Shown: one piece after another, positions 2,712 through 18,655 of the stretch
How positions within the stretch are numbered: the first letter of the stretch is position 1
Layout: every line of letters starts with the position of its first letter
Made by a program: the position numbers and the translations under genes
Sequence record: NC_074654.1
DNA length: 18,655 bases
Strand: one strand, 5' to 3'
The notes under the pieces: model-generated
The model's database searches: none
What the model was told of the DNA's origin: nothing
Seen by the model: only the letters and a program-made list of their open reading frames with translations

Positions 2712-3029
2712 ATGTCCTCCCTAATAGTAGAGGCCTTCGGCAAGATCATAGAGGAATTGGCCTCCCTCGATTGCGACAAAATGAGGCGGCACGAGATAAA
2801 CGGCCGCCTCTACGTGAGGATTAGAAAGCTGAGGGACGCCTCGCTATACCTAGAGGTGCTGAGGACCATATTCGGCGTAGAGGGGGCCTTTAAGTCCGAC
2901 AAGCTCATATACATACCGTGCGACGCCCTCCCCCTCATACGTGAGAGGGCCCTAGCCCTAGGAATATCACCAAAGCCAAGGACGCGGGTAGGCCCACAAG
3001 ATAGTAATAGCGTCGCGAGAGTAGGGTGA
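2712..3029 (+). CDS. 105-aa hypothetical protein, possible winged-helix DNA-binding domain
   Basis: ATG 2712 with CTAAATA about 25 nt upstream; weak similarity by eye to the helicase C-terminus (YLE.L ... hhhPC). Confidence 0.7.
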   Translation: MSSLIVEAFGKIIEELASLDCDKMRRHEINGRLYVRIRKLRDASLYLEVLRTIFGVEGAFKSDKLIYIPCDALPLIRERALALGISPKPRTRVGPQDSNSVARVG

Positions 3030-3910: not shown

Positions 3911-4345
3911 ATGCCTCGCAGAAAGGTGAGGGAGTACAACCCCTCCGAGAGCGACACCATGAGCCTAAAGGGCACCACCGCGGCCTTGAAACATGCCGAA
4001 TTGGTCCTCGTGGCCTCCCCCACATGCCCGGCGTGCAAGGCCCTATTCAAGTCAAAAAGCGTGAGGTACTACGCCTCTAAGGGCGTCATAACCGTGGTGC
4101 CTCCGGACCGCATGAGGCTGGAGGACATGGGCGAGTGGGTCCTGGACTCTAAGGGCTTGGTCCTCATGGCCTCTACCCCCACCTTTCTAGTTAGGTGCAA
4201 GGACGGCCGCGTCCTGTGGCGCTATAGGGTCCAAGCCGTCGATATATACAATGCCGACGCGGTCATGCAATTGGTCCTCGGCACGTTCAAGAGCCTGGCA
4301 ATTGAGTGCATGCCCGAGGACGCGGCCGGCGTAGAGGGCCTATGA
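3911..4345 (+). CDS. Thioredoxin/glutaredoxin-like CxxC protein
   Basis: ASPTCPACK active-site motif (CxxC at 4025-4036) after a beta-strand, plus downstream STPTF cis-Pro-like motif. Start at ATG 3911 or 3959. Confidence 0.72.
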   Translation: MPRRKVREYNPSESDTMSLKGTTAALKHAELVLVASPTCPACKALFKSKSVRYYASKGVITVVPPDRMRLEDMGEWVLDSKGLVLMASTPTFLVRCKDGRVLWRYRVQAVDIYNADAVMQLVLGTFKSLAIECMPEDAAGVEGL

Positions 4346-4446
4346 ATTGCGATTGTATGCAAAAAATCATAGAGGAATTGGTGCGTAGGGGGGTGGTAAG
4401 CAAGGAGGACGCCAAGAAGATGGCCGAGAAATTGGCCAAGGCATGA
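4342..4446 (+). CDS. 34-aa microprotein MNCDCMQKIIEELVRRGVVSKEDAKKMAEKLAKA (not in ORF track); SHOCT-like helical pattern
   Basis: ATGA overlap with the upstream stop (4342-4345) and ATGA overlap with the downstream start (4443-4446). Confidence 0.8.
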   Translation: MNCDCMQKIIEELVRRGVVSKEDAKKMAEKLAKA

Positions 4447-5466: not shown

Positions 5467-5535
5467 TTTTACCTCGATTCGTAAGATTCCCGGGGCACCA
5501 ATTTTACCACGTTTCGTAAATTACGTCCGGAGTAG
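5467..5535. repeat. Intergenic box cluster 2, between convergent genes
   Basis: TTAC-N8-GTAA at 5469-5484 and 5504-5519; TTAC-GTCCGGA-GTAG at 5521-5535; 5463-5488 matches the start of cluster 4 (around 11696-11721) at 25/26. Confidence 0.9.
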
Positions 5536-8834: not shown

Positions 8835-9065
8835 ATGGACCCGCTCACCTACTTGACGGACCCCACCACGTGGCAGGCTATCATAGACCTGCTGAGGCAG
8901 ATATTTTCCTGGGTCATGTCGGCAAACCCCCTAGCCTTGATTTTTGTCGGGGCCGTCGTGGCATTTATCGGAAAGAGGGTTATCGAGGCCGTGGGCCTCC
9001 TTATACTGATATACGGCGTGGTCAAGCTGGTGGCGCCCCTAATAGGCGTCCACTTGCCTTTTTAA
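8835..9065 (+). CDS. 76-aa small membrane protein (2 TM)
   Basis: ATG 8835 (MDPLTYL..) rather than the track's 8685, which lies inside the previous gene. Confidence 0.78.
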   Translation: MDPLTYLTDPTTWQAIIDLLRQIFSWVMSANPLALIFVGAVVAFIGKRVIEAVGLLILIYGVVKLVAPLIGVHLPF

Positions 9066-9112
9066 TTTACGTCCGGAGTAATTTACGAAACGTGGTAAAA
9101 TACGTCCGGAAT
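9063..9112. repeat. Intergenic box cluster 3
   Basis: TTAC-N7-GTAA 9067-9081, TTAC-N8-GTAA 9083-9098, then degenerate ATAC-GTCCGGA-ATAG; upstream of TATA at 9125-9133. Confidence 0.9.
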
Positions 9113-9150
9113 AGCGGTCAATATTAATATATAGGGGCCTACGGCATGAC

Positions 9151-9753
9151 ATGCGGAAAGTCCCAATACCGCTAGTGTTTGCGGCCATAGCCCTAGCGGC
9201 CGTTACCGTAATGCTTAACGTGGCCATGTCATCTATAGTCACATATCAAGGGACGCCCATAAGCCTCGGAGGCGGCTGGATAGCGGTCAACGCAACGACC
9301 CAAGGCCATGCCTACGTCAACGGCACCATGAGGTACGTCGTGATACCCGTGGTGTCGATATACGGCAAGACCCTGACCAATATCACGGCCGGCAACGTCC
9401 TGCTATTCAGCACCTCTACCGCCAAGTGCGCGGCCGTGGCCTATAACCAATACTACATTGGGTTTCAGCTCTACAACAATAGCGGGCTTTGGACGCCCTT
9501 GGAAGGCCAAGGGTCGTGCCCAGCCCAGATAGGGGCCAACAACGTGACCTATATCACCGGCATAGCCGTGAACGCGACCGGCGTGACGCTATATACGGCC
9601 GCGGGCACTTTCTATATTCCCGCCATATACGTGGGCGCGGGGCAGAATTTCGGGGCCGGCGTAGGCAACTACGTGAACCTGGGCAACGGCTTGGTGGCCG
9701 AATACTACTACTACGTTATCACTAACGGCACGTCGGTCAAGATAACCACCTAG
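9151..9753 (+). CDS. Secreted/virion beta-rich glycoprotein, MRK[IV]PIPL-leader family member 1
   Basis: MRKVPIPL plus hydrophobic helix; 7 N-x-S/T sequons; Tyr/Gly/Asn/Thr-rich. Confidence 0.85.
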   Translation: MRKVPIPLVFAAIALAAVTVMLNVAMSSIVTYQGTPISLGGGWIAVNATTQGHAYVNGTMRYVVIPVVSIYGKTLTNITAGNVLLFSTSTAKCAAVAYNQYYIGFQLYNNSGLWTPLEGQGSCPAQIGANNVTYITGIAVNATGVTLYTAAGTFYIPAIYVGAGQNFGAGVGNYVNLGNGLVAEYYYYVITNGTSVKITT

Positions 9754-11699: not shown

Positions 11700-11777
11700 T
11701 TTTACCTCGATCCGTAAGATTGATTTTTACCACGTTCTGTAAATTACGTCCGGTGTAATTTACAAATCGAGGTAAGA
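11700..11777. repeat. Intergenic box cluster 4, including a 53-bp imperfect palindrome
   Basis: N8 boxes 11702-11717, 11727-11742, 11760-11775; N7 box 11744-11758; arms 11725-11747 and 11755-11777 are inverted at 19/23. Confidence 0.92.
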
Positions 11778-11800
11778 TTAGCTGGGTCCGGATAGGCGGC

Positions 11801-11869
11801 CAAGTCCCCCAATTGAAAGGCATTAAATTCCCGGGTGTCGGCGTGTGGCAGCCGTTTCTATTTGTAAAG
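11801..11869 (+). repeat. Internal 69-bp inverted repeat, copy A
   Basis: Exact reverse complement of 16302-16370. Confidence 0.97.
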
Positions 11870-11919
11870 TGCGACGGCCTTTAAGGCAAGCAATATAAAT
11901 TCGGACCGTAGTGGGGTCT

Positions 11920-12663
11920 ATGATAATCCCGCTAGCATTGGGGTCGCTAGCCGCCTTGATACTCGTGGCCCTAATGGGGAGCCGCAACATGCTGGTGTAC
12001 ATACTTATAGAGATATTCGTGTCGGGGGCCTTGGCCCTTGCCGGCGTTGCCGCGTCCACATACGCCCTATTCTCGGGTCTATTCATAGCGGCCATGGCCC
12101 TATGGATAATAACCCACGTAGAGGAAAGGGTGGTTGAAAGGGCCGTGGTGACGCTTTTATCGGTGACCCTGGTGTGGGCCTCTAACAACGCGGTGGCCGC
12201 CCAAGCCCTAGGCGCCCTATCCTATGACATAATCGAGCCCTTCTTCGCGGCATTGGCCACGGTGGGGGACGTGGTGCTGGGCGTCTCGGGCTTCGGTGCC
12301 CTATTCGCCTACATGGTCCTATCCAGCCGCATACTGTCGCTAGCTGAGGAAAACCCGCTAGTGGCTATAGGCTATGTCTACCTCGCCAATGCCGTCCTGT
12401 CGGCCTTGGTGGCGCCCATGCCGGACTTTCTCAAGCTTGCCCTAGGCCTGGCCTTGCTGTACCCGCTAGGGAGGGCCATTAGGGGCAACCTTGAGGCCCT
12501 AGCTGAGGTCGCGCCCGTCCTCTACCTCCTGCCTATCCAGCCCTCGGTCCTGGTACAGCTGGGTGCGGTCATGGCCCTCGTGGAATTGGCTATGGCGATA
12601 CTGTCGCGCAAGCACTTGGTGGGGGCCGCCATGTGGGCCGCGGCCTTGCTATTCGTGGCATGA
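11920..12663 (+). CDS. Polytopic membrane protein (about 8 TM)
   Basis: Almost wholly hydrophobic; ATG 11920 is 26 nt after TATAAAT (11894-11900). Confidence 0.82.
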   Translation: MIIPLALGSLAALILVALMGSRNMLVYILIEIFVSGALALAGVAASTYALFSGLFIAAMALWIITHVEERVVERAVVTLLSVTLVWASNNAVAAQALGALSYDIIEPFFAALATVGDVVLGVSGFGALFAYMVLSSRILSLAEENPLVAIGYVYLANAVLSALVAPMPDFLKLALGLALLYPLGRAIRGNLEALAEVAPVLYLLPIQPSVLVQLGAVMALVELAMAILSRKHLVGAAMWAAALLFVA

Positions 12664-13568
12664 GCTCGTTCATACCGGACCTAGCCGAATACTCGGCCCT
12701 TTTAATACTCGCCATTTTCCTGCCCACCTTGGTCTATGGCGCCATGTCCATGTACCTCGGACCGTCGCCTAACCTGTTTATTATCCAGGCAATAGCCCTA
12801 GCGGCCGTGACCGTAAAGCTGGCTAGGGAGAACCTATTTGACGGGGTTCTATTCGCGGCCGGGGCCTCGATATTCACGGCCATAGCCTACCTCGTGCCCG
12901 TCCCCAAGCTATTCATAGAGGGCTTTAGCGCAATATTGGGGCCCTTTATCAACACCCTGCTGAGCACCGTCATAGAGTTCTTCGCCTTCGGCCTCGCCAT
13001 AGGGGCCATTATGGGCCTTGCCGGCATATTCGTGTCGTTCATAGCCGGCATTATCGGCTTTCTGCTAACGGCCTTTATCATGATATTCGCGAGGCTGTCC
13101 AGGCTGGTGTATGAGGCCACCGAGGCGGCCACGTCACTATTCATTAAGGCCGTGCCGGAGGGGGTCGGAGCCGTCCTGGCGCCCTACTTCGGAGGCATTG
13201 TCATAGCGGCCCCCATAGCCGTGGCCATATCGGTCATAGCCGCGGCCGCGGCCCTATGGCTTGGCATGCTCATAGGCATGGCCATAACCGGCGTGCTATT
13301 CCTCAACGTGAACCTGATACTCTACGGCCTGGCCTCGATATTTTCGGCCGTGTTGCTGAGGCCGCAGTCAATTCCCGTCATAGACATGGCCATGGACATA
13401 GCGGCCCTTGTCCTGGTGCCCTACGTGGTGCCCGTCCTGTGGACCGTGGGCTATGCCTTGCTGTCAAGCCGGAGGTACGCCCACCGCGGCATGTACTTTA
13501 TCGGCATATCGGCCGCGGCCGTGGTGGTCTACGCCCAAGCCGCCTCTATCCTCACGGCCATAATTTAA
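12660..13568 (+). CDS. Polytopic membrane protein (about 9 TM), transporter-like
   Basis: ATGA coupling with the previous gene; Gly/Ala-rich TM helices. Confidence 0.82.
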   Translation: MSSFIPDLAEYSALLILAIFLPTLVYGAMSMYLGPSPNLFIIQAIALAAVTVKLARENLFDGVLFAAGASIFTAIAYLVPVPKLFIEGFSAILGPFINTLLSTVIEFFAFGLAIGAIMGLAGIFVSFIAGIIGFLLTAFIMIFARLSRLVYEATEAATSLFIKAVPEGVGAVLAPYFGGIVIAAPIAVAISVIAAAAALWLGMLIGMAITGVLFLNVNLILYGLASIFSAVLLRPQSIPVIDMAMDIAALVLVPYVVPVLWTVGYALLSSRRYAHRGMYFIGISAAAVVVYAQAASILTAII

Positions 13569-13591
13569 ATGGTAGGTGTTTTTTATTACCT

Positions 13592-13897
13592 ATGCATAAC
13601 ATGGTAACAAAAGCCAAGGCCAAGAAGTGCGACGTGGGCGGATACCTAAGGGCCGGCCGGACGCTCTACTACGTAGGCGACCCGAATACCGCGGTCATGT
13701 ACGCCAGGGTGATAGAGGGCCTCATAAGGTCCAGGCGTAGGCCCAAGTGCGCCAAGTGCGGCAGGGCCGTAGAGGGCATGGCCCATGCCGTCGTGTGGGA
13801 CACTTGCGAGGGCATAGAGGGGGCCCTATGCTGGTCGTGCGCCTCTAAGTACCTAAACTACATGGTATGGGACAACGACGGTGCGATAAGGCTATGA
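13592..13897 (+). CDS. Zinc-finger protein (CxxC..CxxC)
   Basis: CAKC and CWSC pairs; TTTAAAT at 13564-13570; start 13592 or 13601 rather than the track's 13256. Confidence 0.78.
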   Translation: MHNMVTKAKAKKCDVGGYLRAGRTLYYVGDPNTAVMYARVIEGLIRSRRRPKCAKCGRAVEGMAHAVVWDTCEGIEGALCWSCASKYLNYMVWDNDGAIRL

Positions 13898-14247
13898 GCG
13901 AGAAGCCGATAAGGGTGTCCACGGTGCCCTATGAGTATCTGCTGTGCATAGCGCTCAAATTGCTGGCCTACTATTCCCGCGGCAACGGGGTCCTTATGCC
14001 CGTGGACACCAAGAAGGTGAACTACGTCCTCCGCAAGGTGGACAAAAACCTAACCGCGACCCAGATCCTGGTGTCCTCGGTCCTGAACTTCCTAAAGCCG
14101 TTCACGGTGCGCGTGGGCCGAAAGAAGCTGGTCCGCCTAAGCCGCGACGCCATACCGGAGTACTTCGCCATGGTCGGCAAGTCTGTCGATTGCCGTGCGT
14201 GGGACCGGAGGCTGGTCGGCCGGGACCCGCGCTTCGGCCTCAAATAA
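13894..14247 (+). CDS. 117-aa basic protein, possible winged-helix regulator
   Basis: ATGA coupling; same apparent secondary-structure order as gene 11156. Confidence 0.75.
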   Translation: MSEKPIRVSTVPYEYLLCIALKLLAYYSRGNGVLMPVDTKKVNYVLRKVDKNLTATQILVSSVLNFLKPFTVRVGRKKLVRLSRDAIPEYFAMVGKSVDCRAWDRRLVGRDPRFGLK

Positions 14248-14276
14248 TCCATTTTTTAATTGGGCTTATTTCCTAT

Positions 14277-15038
14277 ATGCGCAAGATCCCAATTCCGCTA
14301 ATCGCGGCGGCCGTATTCCTGTCGGCCGTGACCATATACATAACCATAACCATACAGACCATACTGTCCTATGACCCCACATATGTCAGTTTCAACGGCA
14401 CTAACTATATCGTGACCGTGTCGGGCTCTAGCCCCTACGACACCTTTCCGCCCATGTACATAGACGTGGTCAATATCTCACAGGTGTATACGGTGACCTC
14501 GATAGGCTATGGGTCCTCCGACACTTGGTATACATGCCAGGCTGGCGGGTGCGACATAGGCCTCACGATTGTCAACTTCCCCAGCATGCCCAATGCGACG
14601 GCCCTAAATCCCAAGTCCGGCGTGTACGTCTACAAGATGAACACCGGCAACGTGGTGCTGGTGTACGGCACGGCCACCACCTCCGGAGGCACGTCGGGCT
14701 ATATCATATGGCCCTACGTCCTTGTCGCGACGTCCGGGTCGGAGTACTTCTTCATCCTGGCGACCCAGGCACAGACACCGGCCTCTACCATATGCTCAAT
14801 GTCCCCCTTCAGCACGGCCGGCACGGCCGTTATCCAGGCGAGGGACGCCTACTATGTGTGTCCCCTCGCCTCGTGGTCCTCAGGCACGTCCTCCCTTGTC
14901 AAGACCGGATACGTGTCCGTGGGGGCCGGCACGTCGCTAGGCTATAAGGAGATCTATTCCTACTCGTGGGGGTCGATAATCCTACACCCGTGGTACTACG
15001 TGACGTCTAGCGCCTATATCGTGGGCAAGCCAAATTAA
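14277..15038 (+). CDS. Secreted/virion beta-rich protein, MRK[IV]PIPL-leader family member 2 (fibre/adhesin candidate)
   Basis: MRKIPIPLIAAAVFL start at 14277, not the track's 13944; S/T/Y/G-rich; 3 sequons; 4 Cys. Confidence 0.85.
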   Translation: MRKIPIPLIAAAVFLSAVTIYITITIQTILSYDPTYVSFNGTNYIVTVSGSSPYDTFPPMYIDVVNISQVYTVTSIGYGSSDTWYTCQAGGCDIGLTIVNFPSMPNATALNPKSGVYVYKMNTGNVVLVYGTATTSGGTSGYIIWPYVLVATSGSEYFFILATQAQTPASTICSMSPFSTAGTAVIQARDAYYVCPLASWSSGTSSLVKTGYVSVGAGTSLGYKEIYSYSWGSIILHPWYYVTSSAYIVGKPN

Positions 15039-15059
15039 TAAATTTCCCATATTTTCTAC

Positions 15060-16007
15060 ATGCGCAAGATACCCATACCGCTAATAATAGCGGCCGTATT
15101 CCTAGTTGCGGTGGCAATATACATAACCTACACGGTGAACACGGCCGCACCGCCTATATGGACGTCGGCCGCTAACCAGACCATAAACCTGGTGACGCCC
15201 CAGACATATTTCATCTACGGCACGGAGTTCAACAGGGTGGTGGACGGCAAGTCCTTGACCACGGTGAGCCAGCTGGGCTCTAGGCTGGCCACGATAGCCG
15301 TGAACAACACGGCCTATATACCGTGGATAATTGTAAGCGAGTCCAAGGTGTCGGGCTCTATAGGCTCACCCGATATAGGTGTGGGTAGTGCCACGATTAA
15401 TCTGCCCATGCTTCTCGCCATGGCCTACAACGAGAGCCAGCTGGCCAGCATGTACGGCACTAACACCATATGTGTCACGATAAACGGGACGTCGGTGACC
15501 CTCCAGGTCAACCCCTCGGGGGCGCCCGGGTATATCGCGCTAGGCTATGTATTCAAGAACTCTTACAATTATCTATTCGGTCTAGAGGTTGAATACTACT
15601 ACGTGGGCAAGGTCGTGACGGCCAACGGCTTTACTTGGTACATGTACCTACTCGCACCCATGGCCGGAGCCGCGACGGGCAAGATAACGCTATCAACCTA
15701 CGCCTGTAGTTACACCACGTCCTCAGCAATACCGACCGAGGTCACGCAGGTCGGCGTGTCGGGCTATCTACCTTATGTAACTATTTATTATAATTCGGGT
15801 TATTCGGGTTATACAAACTTTAATTTCCAATTCACCCAGGTCGCTAACGTGACCACAAGCACCACGCCCGTGTCGGTGCCGGCTGGGTCGGGCTCTACCA
15901 TATATGGGCCGGGCACAAACCCCATGGTGCTGGGCGTCGCTCTGCCAATGGAGGCCTACGCTTTCCCGGTTAATAACGGTCCGGTGCAAATAACCTATAG
16001 CCCGTAA
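15060..16007 (+). CDS. Secreted/virion beta-rich protein, MRK[IV]PIPL-leader family member 3 (fibre/adhesin candidate)
   Basis: MRKIPIPLIIAAVFL; 5 sequons; TTAATAAA 25 nt upstream. Confidence 0.87.
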   Translation: MRKIPIPLIIAAVFLVAVAIYITYTVNTAAPPIWTSAANQTINLVTPQTYFIYGTEFNRVVDGKSLTTVSQLGSRLATIAVNNTAYIPWIIVSESKVSGSIGSPDIGVGSATINLPMLLAMAYNESQLASMYGTNTICVTINGTSVTLQVNPSGAPGYIALGYVFKNSYNYLFGLEVEYYYVGKVVTANGFTWYMYLLAPMAGAATGKITLSTYACSYTTSSAIPTEVTQVGVSGYLPYVTIYYNSGYSGYTNFNFQFTQVANVTTSTTPVSVPAGSGSTIYGPGTNPMVLGVALPMEAYAFPVNNGPVQITYSP

Positions 16008-16040
16008 CCGAATATTTTTTCTACCTATCAATTTTCTAGT

Positions 16041-16181
16041 ATGTCTCGGAGCGTCCATAGGCTGACTTGGGGCATTGCGGTAGTGCTGGCGATTGCTGGC
16101 CTCCTTGGCTATATCAGCCCGGCCAATGCCGCCCTCCTTGGCCTCCTAGTGGCCGGTGCCGGTGAGCTCTTTGAGGAATAG
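16041..16181 (+). CDS. 46-aa two-TM microprotein MSRSVHRLTWGIAVVLAIAGLLGYISPANAALLGLLVAGAGELFEE (not in ORF track)
   Basis: ATG preceded by ATTTTCTAGT, like the context of gene 15060; clean helical hairpin. Confidence 0.75.
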   Translation: MSRSVHRLTWGIAVVLAIAGLLGYISPANAALLGLLVAGAGELFEE

Positions 16182-16201
16182 GCCGGCCTAACCCACCCAT
16201 T

Positions 16202-16238
16202 TTTTACCACGTTTCGTAAATTACGGGTCGAGGTAAAT
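16202..16238. repeat. Intergenic box cluster 5a
   Basis: N8 boxes 16204-16219 and 16221-16236 joined by CGTAAATTACG; 16202-16224 identical to 5502-5524. Confidence 0.92.
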
Positions 16239-16301
16239 TACCGACCTGCCCGTAGAATACCCCTCGCTTTGGGGCCTCGCCTATCCGGCAAGGCGGAGGC
16301 C

Positions 16302-16370
16302 CTTTACAAATAGAAACGGCTGCCACACGCCGACACCCGGGAATTTAATGCCTTTCAATTGGGGGACTTG
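16302..16370 (-). repeat. Internal 69-bp inverted repeat, copy B
   Basis: Exact reverse complement of 11801-11869. Confidence 0.97.
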
Positions 16371-16393
16371 TCCGGCCTCCTGGAGCCCGTCAT

Positions 16394-16430
16394 TTTTACC
16401 TCGATTCGTAAATTACGAAACGTGATAAGA
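16394..16430. repeat. Intergenic box cluster 5b
   Basis: N8 box 16396-16411 and near-perfect box 16413-16428 (ends ATAA). Confidence 0.9.
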
Positions 16431-16526
16431 TTCAGATATGTAAAATACATATTTCGGCGTGCCGGGCTTTCGGCGTGGCTAGTTGAAAGCTGAGCGGTAC
16501 CCTACATAGTTGAAAGACGTGGTTCA

Positions 16527-16565
16527 TTACACCCGTCGTAAATTACGGGGCCGATAAGTTTAAAT
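16527..16565 (+). promoter_or_regulatory. Promoter of the right-terminal operon with two N7 boxes directly upstream of the TATA
   Basis: TTAC-N7-GTAA 16527-16541, TTAC-N7-ATAA 16543-16557, TTTAAAT 16559-16565, ATG at 16587. Confidence 0.7.
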
Positions 16566-18196: not shown

Positions 18197-18531
18197 GGTG
18201 GCTGACCCACATTATATGGGGCGTCGCGGCCCTCTCCTTTTTCTCCGTGGACCTGACTGTGGCGGCCGGCATGTCCTTTATCCATACGGCCTTGACCGAC
18301 GTATTCGGCCATACGGGACTACACCGCAATAGGTACCACGACATACTCGCCATATTTTGGGCCGTCCTAATCGCGGGACTCATTAAGAACCCCGCCTTTA
18401 TTGTCCTGGGTCCTTTGCACATAATATTGGACCTAATTTCTCCTGGGAGGTGGGGCGTGAATTGGGCCTACAATTCCCTATTCATAGCCTTGGCCGCGGC
18501 CCTATTAATGGCGAGGGGCGTGCCGATATAA
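18193..18531 (+). CDS. YdjM/DUF457-like membrane-bound metal-dependent hydrolase
   Basis: N-terminal THxxWG, TD..GH..HR..YH and LHIILD.ISPG motifs in a multi-TM protein match the family pattern TH..PD.D..HR..THS..H..LD. Confidence 0.72.
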   Translation: MRWLTHIIWGVAALSFFSVDLTVAAGMSFIHTALTDVFGHTGLHRNRYHDILAIFWAVLIAGLIKNPAFIVLGPLHIILDLISPGRWGVNWAYNSLFIALAAALLMARGVPI

Positions 18532-18554
18532 ATTACGTGGACCTGTAAAAAACC
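18530..18554. repeat. Box cluster 6 abutting the right ITR
   Basis: N8 box 18533-18548; 25-bp exact inverted match to 2584-2608. Confidence 0.9.
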
Positions 18555-18655
18555 CTATTATATAGGGAGCTGAAAGCCGTACATATTCCTCACCTATATG
18601 TGGGGAATTGTCGGGGTTCAACCTCGGGAGGGTTGAATCCCGAGGGACCTGAATC
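18553..18655 (-). repeat. Right inverted terminal repeat (103 bp)
   Basis: Reverse complement of 74-176. Confidence 0.97.

Follow-up and report, generated by a model that had tools for sequence, protein, structure and literature searches.

Does a perfect inverted repeat around the fibre genes of a virus mark the borders of a segment that can be turned over, and with it a switch of host range, or does it have another origin and another use? The question is raised by the archaeal globulovirus TSPV1 (host Thermoproteus sp. CP80; sequence record NC_074654.1; the whole stretch analysed, 18,655 nucleotides, is called the window below), in which positions 11801-11869 are the reverse complement of positions 16302-16370 over 69 of 69 nucleotides, the match ending sharply at both borders. 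An earlier reading of the DNA letters alone (the sequence-only reading) had reported this perfect repeat and interpreted the 4.4-kb module between its arms, genes GP19-GP25, as an invertible or exchangeable host-range cassette or, as another possibility, the repeat itself as a duplicated small RNA or cis-element. Comparison of the locus with its metagenomic relatives leads us to propose, with no more than moderate confidence, that the 69-bp element, which we name R69, is a repeated intergenic promoter or regulatory cassette rather than the border of a switch. That fibre genes lie between the arms of a perfect internal inverted repeat does not by itself indicate a host-range switch.

R69 as a dispersed intergenic element

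The TSPV1 record contains 31 annotated proteins (GP1-GP31), all of them designated as hypothetical, and 29 of the 31 are encoded on the plus strand. Both copies of R69 are non-coding and stand beside clusters of palindromic boxes, just as described before: the left copy (11801-11869, plus strand) lies within the 211-nt spacer between GP18 and GP19 and faces GP19, while the right one (16302-16370, minus strand) lies within the 405-nt spacer between GP25 and GP26 and faces back to GP25. Chance cannot account for a perfect match of 69 nt in 18.7 kb. Under looser matching criteria it grows to 127 nt at 87% identity (11755-11881 and 16290-16416), because the match of R69 runs on into the neighbouring box. 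The 11-mer CCGGATAGGCG, also noticed in the sequence-only reading, does occur at two sites only, 11788-11798 (plus) and 16278-16288 (minus), and on opposite sides of the repeat: read in the orientation of R69, it precedes the left copy on the upstream side and follows the right one on the downstream side. Misassembly of one copy, which the same reading had allowed for, is contradicted by an independent 19.3-kb contig (L021/L043) with the same arrangement and 66/69 identity between its own two copies; the pair is therefore not an assembly artefact.

Homologues of GP19 were found in metagenomes at 96%, 79% and 67% identity, and the contigs of all three were taken in. A metagenome scan with a 23-nt pattern of R69 yielded 17 further loci, many of them on contigs of 17-22 kb, and look-ups with GP18, GP25 and GP26 added approximately 25 more. 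The TSPV1 proteins and R69-like sequences were then mapped on all of these related metagenomic contigs or loci, about 40 in total (L-numbers denote loci). IMG/VR provided no relatives, either by the DNA pattern or by GP19, and a phage collection searched at the DNA level provided only TSPV1 itself.

Among these genomes R69 is a dispersed intergenic element, present in one to three copies per genome at up to three sites, which are operon borders: S1 between GP1 and GP2, S2 between GP18 and GP19 (the left copy of TSPV1), and S3 between GP25 and GP26 (the right copy). S1 is occupied in seven loci (L005, L014, L015, L016, L017, L019 and L025) and without the element in TSPV1, L018 and L028. At S2 every contig covering GP18-GP19 has a copy, and the orientation there is always towards GP19. 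At S3 the element is directed towards GP25 (minus) in TSPV1 and most of the relatives, and towards GP26 (plus) in L005/L053, L052 and L057, which originate from three samples and have identical intergenic sequence; the copies in the L005/L052/L057 lineage are thus direct instead of inverted. In L027 the S3 copy is absent, and a single box stands at that place. The idea of a duplicated cis-element is in good agreement with this distribution. Judging by it, the inverted pair of TSPV1 is one of several arrangements, the inversion around the 4.4-kb block being most likely incidental, a by-product.

Conserved core and promoter-like signal

Within R69 we distinguish a conserved core of 34 nt, AATTGAAAGGCATTAAATTCCCGGGTGTCGGCGT, located at 11811-11844 (plus) in the left copy and at 16327-16360 (minus) in the right one. 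Mean pairwise identity of the core among 15 distinct S2 orthologues is 0.959, versus 0.873 at the third codon positions of GP19, i.e., the core evolves approximately three times slower, with the reservation that the 23-nt search pattern lies within the core and inflates its conservation in the loci fetched by this pattern; neither the second copies nor the loci retrieved by way of proteins (L033-L041) are affected.

The core includes the sequence GAAAGGCATTAAATT (11815-11829), similar to a transcription factor B recognition element (BRE) with a TATA box; the TATA-like part of the right copy is at 16342-16356. The octamer WWTAAATW occurs 13 times in TSPV1 (3.8 expected), and of its 11 occurrences outside R69, 8-9 are placed 15-27 nt upstream of a start codon, which makes it a specific promoter mark in this genome. 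GAAAGGCATTAAATT shares the WWTAAATW form with the TATA elements of GP7, GP11, GP17, GP19, GP24, GP26 and others, and R69 has a TATA-like octamer together with an upstream purine-rich BRE, as the genome's own promoters do. At archaeal promoters the start site is some 22-27 nt downstream of the TATA centre; for the left copy the start is predicted near 11846-11852, in the variable 3' part of R69 (GTGGCAGCCGTTTCTATTTGTAAAG, 11845-11869, plus). No conserved open reading frame (ORF) follows R69 in the relatives.

From these features, together with the exchanges described below, we infer the promoter activity of R69, the direction of its transcript and its recombination pathway. The S2 copy, which is the constant one, would most likely give the structural operon extending from the VP2 homologue GP19 to the fibre genes a second promoter further upstream, or else an activator site. 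The proximal TATA of this operon is at 11892-11901 (plus), with an ATG at 11920 and the annotated GTG at 11911. The S3 copy of TSPV1 and the S1 copies of relatives would be dispensable satellites heading non-coding DNA, and the right copy in TSPV1 might start a non-coding transcript, antisense into GP25-GP23. The copies may recombine by means of host homologous recombination, in short conversion tracts and reciprocal exchanges for which R69 and the boxes supply the homology; such exchange would keep the copies alike and would have made the TSPV1 pair identical very recently.

Several points weigh against this reading, besides the bias of the search pattern. A minus-strand transcript from the right copy would run for 2.3 kb without meeting a T5 run, which sits badly with a short RNA. 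The S3 cassette, read on the plus strand, ends in a GC-rich palindrome and T5 (16371-16397), similar to a terminator, so transcription might instead proceed on that opposite strand. A core-like sequence of the more distant L007 lineage, GGCATTAAGGCGCCGGGTGTC, is located only 10 nt from the TATA of VP2 and is itself a poor TATA; a protein-binding site fits better than a promoter there. As to the orientation of the bracketed block, considered below, assemblies give the majority arrangement only, and rare flipped isomers would be below their resolution.

The core could also be regarded as a site for a viral or host DNA-binding protein which also recognizes the genome ends and has a role in replication, end processing, packaging or genome organization, the internal copies being end-like. 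We consider this possible, though unlikely. The location of the L007 sequence directly upstream of the VP2 TATA speaks in its favor, as does the fact that core conservation reaches 15 nt past the TATA (GGTGTCGGCGT), something not usually seen at a plain promoter. Outside its two copies in TSPV1, R69 finds its best match in the terminal repeat (AAGGCATTAAGGTCCC, positions 53-68; P ~0.01 for the terminal 200 nt), and in the relatives AATTGATGGCATTAAGGTCCC is present at a distance of about 20-75 nt from each of the two contig ends. The heptamer TTGAAAG is present 6 times (0.9 expected), and 5 of the 6 sites are in non-coding DNA, namely in the two R69 copies, at the left terminus and, twice, upstream of GP26. 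However, the likeness to the termini is short (16-22 nt) and only marginally significant, an internal copy number of 1-3 would be odd for an essential replication or packaging site, no binding protein has been identified, and the TATA-like motif is a strong promoter marker in TSPV1.

Gene conversion between the copies

The sequence-only reading had explained the absence of mismatches by a recent duplication or by ongoing homogenization, and it is the second explanation that is supported. Within genomes, the S2 and S3 copies share 69 of 69 positions in TSPV1, 68 in L005, 66 in L021 and then 63, 63 and 52, whereas the same-site elements of TSPV1 and L005 share 59 of 69 (10 differences); upon permutation of genome labels, 3.6% of the pairings reach the observed within-genome mean identity. 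Paralogues are more alike than orthologues, hence the copies evolve in concert. The allele GCAGCCGTTTC is found among the recovered S2 alleles only in TSPV1 and the near-identical fragment L033. It is the S3 allele of TSPV1 and L021, and S2 of the closest relatives carries GCAGCTATTTC or GCTGCTTTTTC. Since S2 of TSPV1 carries the S3 allele, the conversion in the TSPV1 lineage went from S3 to S2. Between genomes, the last 25 nt of R69 at its 3' side have an identity of 0.874, compared with 0.873 at the third codon positions of GP19; this part is near neutral, and its perfect identity in TSPV1 therefore reflects recency and not constraint. Taken together, the alignments argue that the zero mismatches of the TSPV1 pair come from recent gene conversion. 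A recent duplication is at variance with the presence of the copies in relatives.

The neighbourhood of the copies is mosaic as well. In TSPV1 the left copy is preceded by spacer s1 (AGCTGGGTCCGGATAGGCGGC, 11780-11800, plus), which contains the 11-mer at 11788-11798, and the right copy by spacer s2 (GACGGGCTCCAGGAGGCCGGA, 16371-16391, minus), a GC-rich imperfect palindrome. In L005, L055 and L058 an s1-type spacer is upstream of the S3 copy, not of the S2 copy, and in L005 an s2-type spacer is at S2, i.e., the spacers of S2 and S3 are exchanged in this genome relative to TSPV1; L018/L024 have a chimeric s2/s1 spacer. Spacers homologous to s2 are palindromes of varied sequence, such as CCGGCCTC-AAA-GAGGCCGG and CCGGCCTCC-G-GGAGGCCGG. 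The tail of the right-hand cassette (CCAAAGCGAGGGGTATTCTACGGGCAGGTCG, 16242-16272, minus) is conserved in the S1 and S3 cassettes of relatives and is also found as a lone remnant, at S3 (plus) in L020/L022/L026/L029/L055/L058 and at S2 (reverse) in L005/L016/L017. Such swapped and chimeric spacers and stray tails are footprints of conversion and reciprocal exchange between the inverted regions. Intragenomic recombination and gene conversion are thus actively reshaping the intergenic regions of TSPV1-like viruses, with GP24 varying independently.

Palindromic boxes and the cassette at S3

The half-box TTTACCNCGNTYNGTAA has 11 occurrences in TSPV1, against 0.01 expected, and CGTAANTTACG has 5, against 0.02. 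All copies of both are intergenic and belong to six operon borders. The full boxes are palindromes of about 35 nt. Boxes, with the pattern TTTACC-N-CG-N-TT-CGTAA-A-TTACG..., are found at 2584-2674, 5467-5534, 9059-9113, 11700-11779, 16200-16242, 16393-16432, 16526-16550 and 18529-18554. They often begin with a run of T5-T6 after a stop codon and provide T runs at operon ends. The boxes are probably operators or terminators, and they are clearly recombination hot spots. In the cluster next to the left R69 copy (11700-11779) there are three half-boxes TTTACCNCGNTYNGTAA, at 11701-11717 (plus), 11726-11742 (plus) and 11760-11776 (minus), with a T5 run at 11724-11728.

At the right copy, box b1 (16200-16242), a composite palindrome centred on CGTAAATTACG, has a T6 run (16200-16205) just after GP25, and its inverted partner b2 (16393-16432) opens with a T5 run (16393-16397). 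The inverted match between them (16204-16237 and 16395-16428) is 34 nt long at 88%, and the two boxes bracket a cassette of about 190 nt that includes the right R69. Downstream of R69 this cassette contains the GC-rich hairpin-forming palindrome GGCCTCCGCCTTGCCGGATAGGCGAGGCC (16273-16301, minus), which includes the second 11-mer (16278-16288) and persists in relatives, where one pair has changed in a compensatory way (T-A to C-G) and several G-T pairs are present.

The S1 cassette of L005 has a copy of the box TTTTACRGATCGAGGTAAAAATG on each side, the two in direct orientation, and at the same place in TSPV1 there is a single box of this kind. A single box at empty sites and two boxes at occupied sites mean that cassettes have been gained or lost between boxes; this contrast fits box recombination as well as insertion. 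Terminal inverted repeats and a flanking duplication, the features typical of miniature inverted-repeat transposable elements, are both absent from R69 itself. At S3 the cassette is in plus orientation in L005/L052/L057 and in minus orientation in L055/L058/L059, while the GP25 protein is identical, as is GP26 where the contig reaches it; the two forms come from different samples and have further differences (the remnant tail, single-nucleotide polymorphisms). The minus form is located between 20-nt perfect inverted box halves. As far as assembled sequences are concerned, it is demonstrably the small box-flanked cassette, not the 4.4-kb block, that occurs inverted among near-identical genomes.

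One could go further and suppose that cassettes of about 170-190 nt, carrying the same strong promoter between palindromic 35-nt boxes, are inverted, deleted, duplicated and moved on short time scales by box recombination, which would redirect transcription. The cassette of about 190 nt between GP25 and GP26, having a promoter-like element between inverted boxes and occurring in both orientations, does resemble the fimS element of E. coli and the H segment (hin) of Salmonella. In contrast to these, however, it lacks a dedicated recombinase, its orientations come from different samples and its promoter is predicted from WWTAAATW only; we regard the supposition as rather improbable. If true, it would mean transcription redirected either into the GP26 operon, in the sense direction, or into the fibre genes GP25-GP23, in the antisense direction, i.e., a regulation similar to phase variation in an archaeal virus, by host recombination or by an unrecognized box-binding recombinase, and the presence of the same core near the genome ends would tie the system to end-directed transcription or replication.

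Two more observations concern these borders. The segment 16436-16520 of the spacer between GP25 and GP26 is conserved in all relatives, even in those without the cassette; a palindrome of 17 nt, ATATGTAAAATACATAT, is found there along with two AGTTGAAAG motifs in direct orientation upstream of the GP26 promoter. In the more distant lineage L011/L012 (JGI Ga0199148_1000543; ENA ERZ1669249 NODE_526), where VP2 is 67% identical, the gene order differs: a GP26-like gene follows GP18, and VP2 is immediately preceded by the GP2-GP5 block. The genomes of this virus group are therefore subject to large rearrangements, the breakpoints of which fall at the same box-rich borders.

The bracketed block and the fibre gene GP24

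The block between the R69 copies (GP19-GP25, 11911-16181, plus) encodes a VP2 homologue, a protein with eight transmembrane (TM) segments, a zinc-finger protein, GP22, GP23, GP24 and a 46-aa membrane protein. GP19 is homologous to the globulovirus coat protein VP2 (PHROG 35471, E = 3e-70; 42-47% identity to VP2 of TTSV1, PSV2 and PSV) and has about 6 predicted TM segments; GP20 is a conserved globulovirus protein with about 8. These are the two polytopic membrane proteins that the sequence-only reading had recognized, and its micro-membrane protein is GP25 (46 aa, a single TM segment). The zinc finger assigned to GP21 stands as far as its CxxC pairs are concerned, the matches to zinc ribbons being weak, and the putative regulator, GP22, found no support; no match to this protein was detected. 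GP23 and GP24 do share the predicted MRK-PIPL beginning, their common sequence being limited to the first 28 residues (MRKIPIPLI...), and neither has a sequence relative in the PDB; they are fibre candidates, and GP24 is reportedly the filament protein. The block thus holds core structural genes of the family and is not an accessory cassette. Its promoter was rightly placed inside the bracket: the proximal TATA of GP19 would move with the block.

We consider next whether the block flips, either by host homologous recombination across the 69-bp repeats, giving two isomers as known for the inverted repeats of chloroplasts or herpesviruses, or as a programmed host-range switch resembling the G segment of phage Mu. 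A perfect inverted repeat of 69 bp is certainly a good recombination substrate. The spacers upstream of R69 are swapped between TSPV1 and L005, and the remnant tail is found either at S3 (plus) or at S2 (reverse), depending on the genome, the swap and the tails being what a double crossover (R69 and box) between inverted regions would be expected to leave; moreover, GP19 would still follow an R69 copy and its own TATA after a flip, so toleration would be expected. Yet GP18 to GP19 and GP25 to GP26 are co-oriented in every spanning locus, about 20 per side, i.e., in independent contigs from many Yellowstone-type samples and many years, and in the assembly many contigs run through both copies of R69. 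No flipped GP19-GP25 junction was present in the fetched loci, no search aimed at the recombinant junction having been made. The bracket itself is not conserved, as the copies are direct in one lineage and the right copy is missing in L027. No Pfam domains of recombinases, integrases, transposases, resolvases or invertases were detected in 30 of the 31 proteins (E <= 0.01-0.1), so that the remark that no recombinase is visible holds at the Pfam level. The repeats cut no gene, all seven bracketed genes are on the plus strand and there is no alternative fibre set; with non-coding repeats, genes facing one way and the TATA inside the bracket, inversion would change no product, and nothing would be switched. 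The sequence-only reading's invertible or exchangeable host-range cassette is not supported, given this constant orientation of the block, the direct copies and the absence of the right copy in L027, and we find a flipping segment of either kind very unlikely.

Segments of Mu (G segment, Gin) and P1 (C segment, Cin) are similar to the TSPV1 locus in having inverted repeats around a few kb with fibre-type genes. In these phages a serine invertase gene is located beside the segment, and the 34-bp crossover sites are placed within a fibre gene. The two alternative C-terminal gene sets are oriented against each other, and every lysate contains the segment in both orientations. TSPV1, in contrast, has no recombinase domain, its repeats are non-coding, its single gene set occupies one strand, and no contig shows a flipped block. 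Of the four features of Gin/Cin/Hin/Pin-type systems, the one found here is that inverted repeats flank the segment; a recombinase gene, both orientations and an exchange of coding sequences or promoter-gene connections are not found.

What does vary within the block is GP24 alone, which likewise speaks against a switch of the whole. In GP24 (15060-16007) the part 15160-15960 (plus) is hypervariable, with 64-86% nucleotide identity to L021/L024/L005, while its flanks in L021/L024 are 96-99% identical. Relatives have one or two GP24 paralogues, and GP23 is absent from L029. On this comparison, the exchange-prone region is the hypervariable part of GP24 and not the block bounded by R69. A 55-nt repeat is found at the 5' ends of GP13, GP23 and GP24 (9149-9203, 14275-14329 and 15058-15112), where it encodes the N-terminal MRK(I/V)PIPL...; it is a likely substrate for fibre-gene exchange.

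Small RNA, small protein and other readings

It is also very unlikely that R69 is a duplicated small non-coding RNA gene, on either strand, or a part of one, the RNA corresponding to a box-to-box cassette of about 150-190 nt. In the S1 and S3 cassettes R69 is flanked on either side by GC-rich palindromes able to form hairpins, in which some compensatory change is seen, the S3 unit on the plus strand ends in a palindrome and T5 (16371-16397), and box b1 contains a TATA-like GGTAAATTACC, all of which would suit such a gene. But the R69 region has no match in Rfam at E <= 1, and ARAGORN found no transfer RNA or transfer-messenger RNA; the folding energies of R69 and of the 150-nt unit, on both strands, show no excess over shuffled sequences (z = +0.8, +0.4, +0.1 and -0.2). 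RNAalifold on 12 cassettes gave a weak consensus of -10 kcal/mol with a covariation term of -1.3, the strand preferred by hairpin energy is inconsistent between the S1 and S3 cassettes, and the S2 copy lacks the downstream hairpin and tail. The duplicated small RNA put forward by the sequence-only reading is therefore not corroborated, given the lack of an Rfam match and a folding no better than that of shuffles.

A small protein was rejected, as the GTG-started ORFs within R69 (17 aa in the left copy, 40 aa in the right one) are not conserved and most alleles read GTA TAG there. A host-derived sequence or attachment site was rejected as well: the 21-nt pattern of the core had no match in 185,579 species genomes (one per species). 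Finally, a very recent one-off duplication or an assembly error, devoid of function, would agree with the lack of mismatches over 69 nt but is hardly credible, as the two-site arrangement recurs in many independently assembled relatives with 52-68/69 between copies, i.e., the duplication is old, the flanks differ and are site-specific, and the core is under purifying selection.

Comparison with other repeats and with globuloviruses

In a number of respects R69 resembles the inverted repeats of plastids, the repeats of herpesviruses and palindromic gene pairs: paralogues are more similar than orthologues, tracts are mosaic, and identity extends over otherwise neutral positions. It differs from them in being only 69 bp long and non-coding, in having up to three copies in mixed orientation, and in that no isomerization is seen. 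Closer to it, as multi-copy intergenic repeats at operon borders, are the 60-nt and 54-119-nt families of PSV and the 95-nt repeats of TTSV1, for which we know of no described function. The nine-copy family of PSV, with the palindrome CTTTACG-N5-CGTAAA directly upstream of a TATA box and ATG, is related to the boxes of TSPV1; the repeat copies of TTSV1 are all direct, unlike R69. R69 belongs, in our interpretation, with such dispersed regulatory repeats under gene conversion.

When the whole unit is aligned with PSV, TTSV1 and PSV2, the scores of R69 do not exceed those of shuffled sequences. In L016/L026/L030, though, the 25 nt at the 3' side of the R69 alleles match a four-copy element of PSV, a stretch of its 60-nt family, in 23 of 25 positions (score 40, with a maximum of 32 among 100 shuffles). 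This match is notable because globulovirus genomes were reported to have no appreciable nucleotide similarity to each other (bioRxiv 10.1101/2020.01.16.907410). The PSV (L004) element, ...ATAGCTGCAT-NN-GCTATTTGTAAAG, occurs at 4344-4403, 15257-15316 and 23079-23138 in one orientation and at 26677-26702 in the opposite one. TTTGTAAAG is located about 80-90 nt from both PSV ends. According to the ICTV profile, nothing is known about globulovirus replication, and the ends of PSV appear covalently closed (PMC12662056). With transcription and replication of globuloviruses almost unknown and nearly all of their genes unannotated, cis-elements are of value, and three concrete ones are gained here: the 34-nt promoter-like core, the 11-copy palindromic box and the short motif shared with PSV.

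Genome ends and unannotated genes

The terminal inverted repeat of TSPV1 is offset: 74-176 pairs perfectly with 18553-18655, and positions 1-73 at the left are without a partner. In relatives, the GGCATTAAGGTCCC... motif of the stretch 1-73 is near both contig ends; the right end of the deposited TSPV1 sequence is therefore probably short by about 73 nt. The left end (1-835) has no annotated gene. An unannotated ORF of 105 aa (2712-3029, plus) has the TATA-like CTCTAAATAGG 24 nt upstream; its protein is 77-99% identical in nine related contigs, and the ORF overlaps the 3' end of GP2 convergently by approximately 95 nt. A second ORF, of 47 aa (2441-2584, plus), likewise unannotated in TSPV1, begins 18 nt behind TATAAATA (2416-2423), and the corresponding position of L005 has an annotated gene of equal length.

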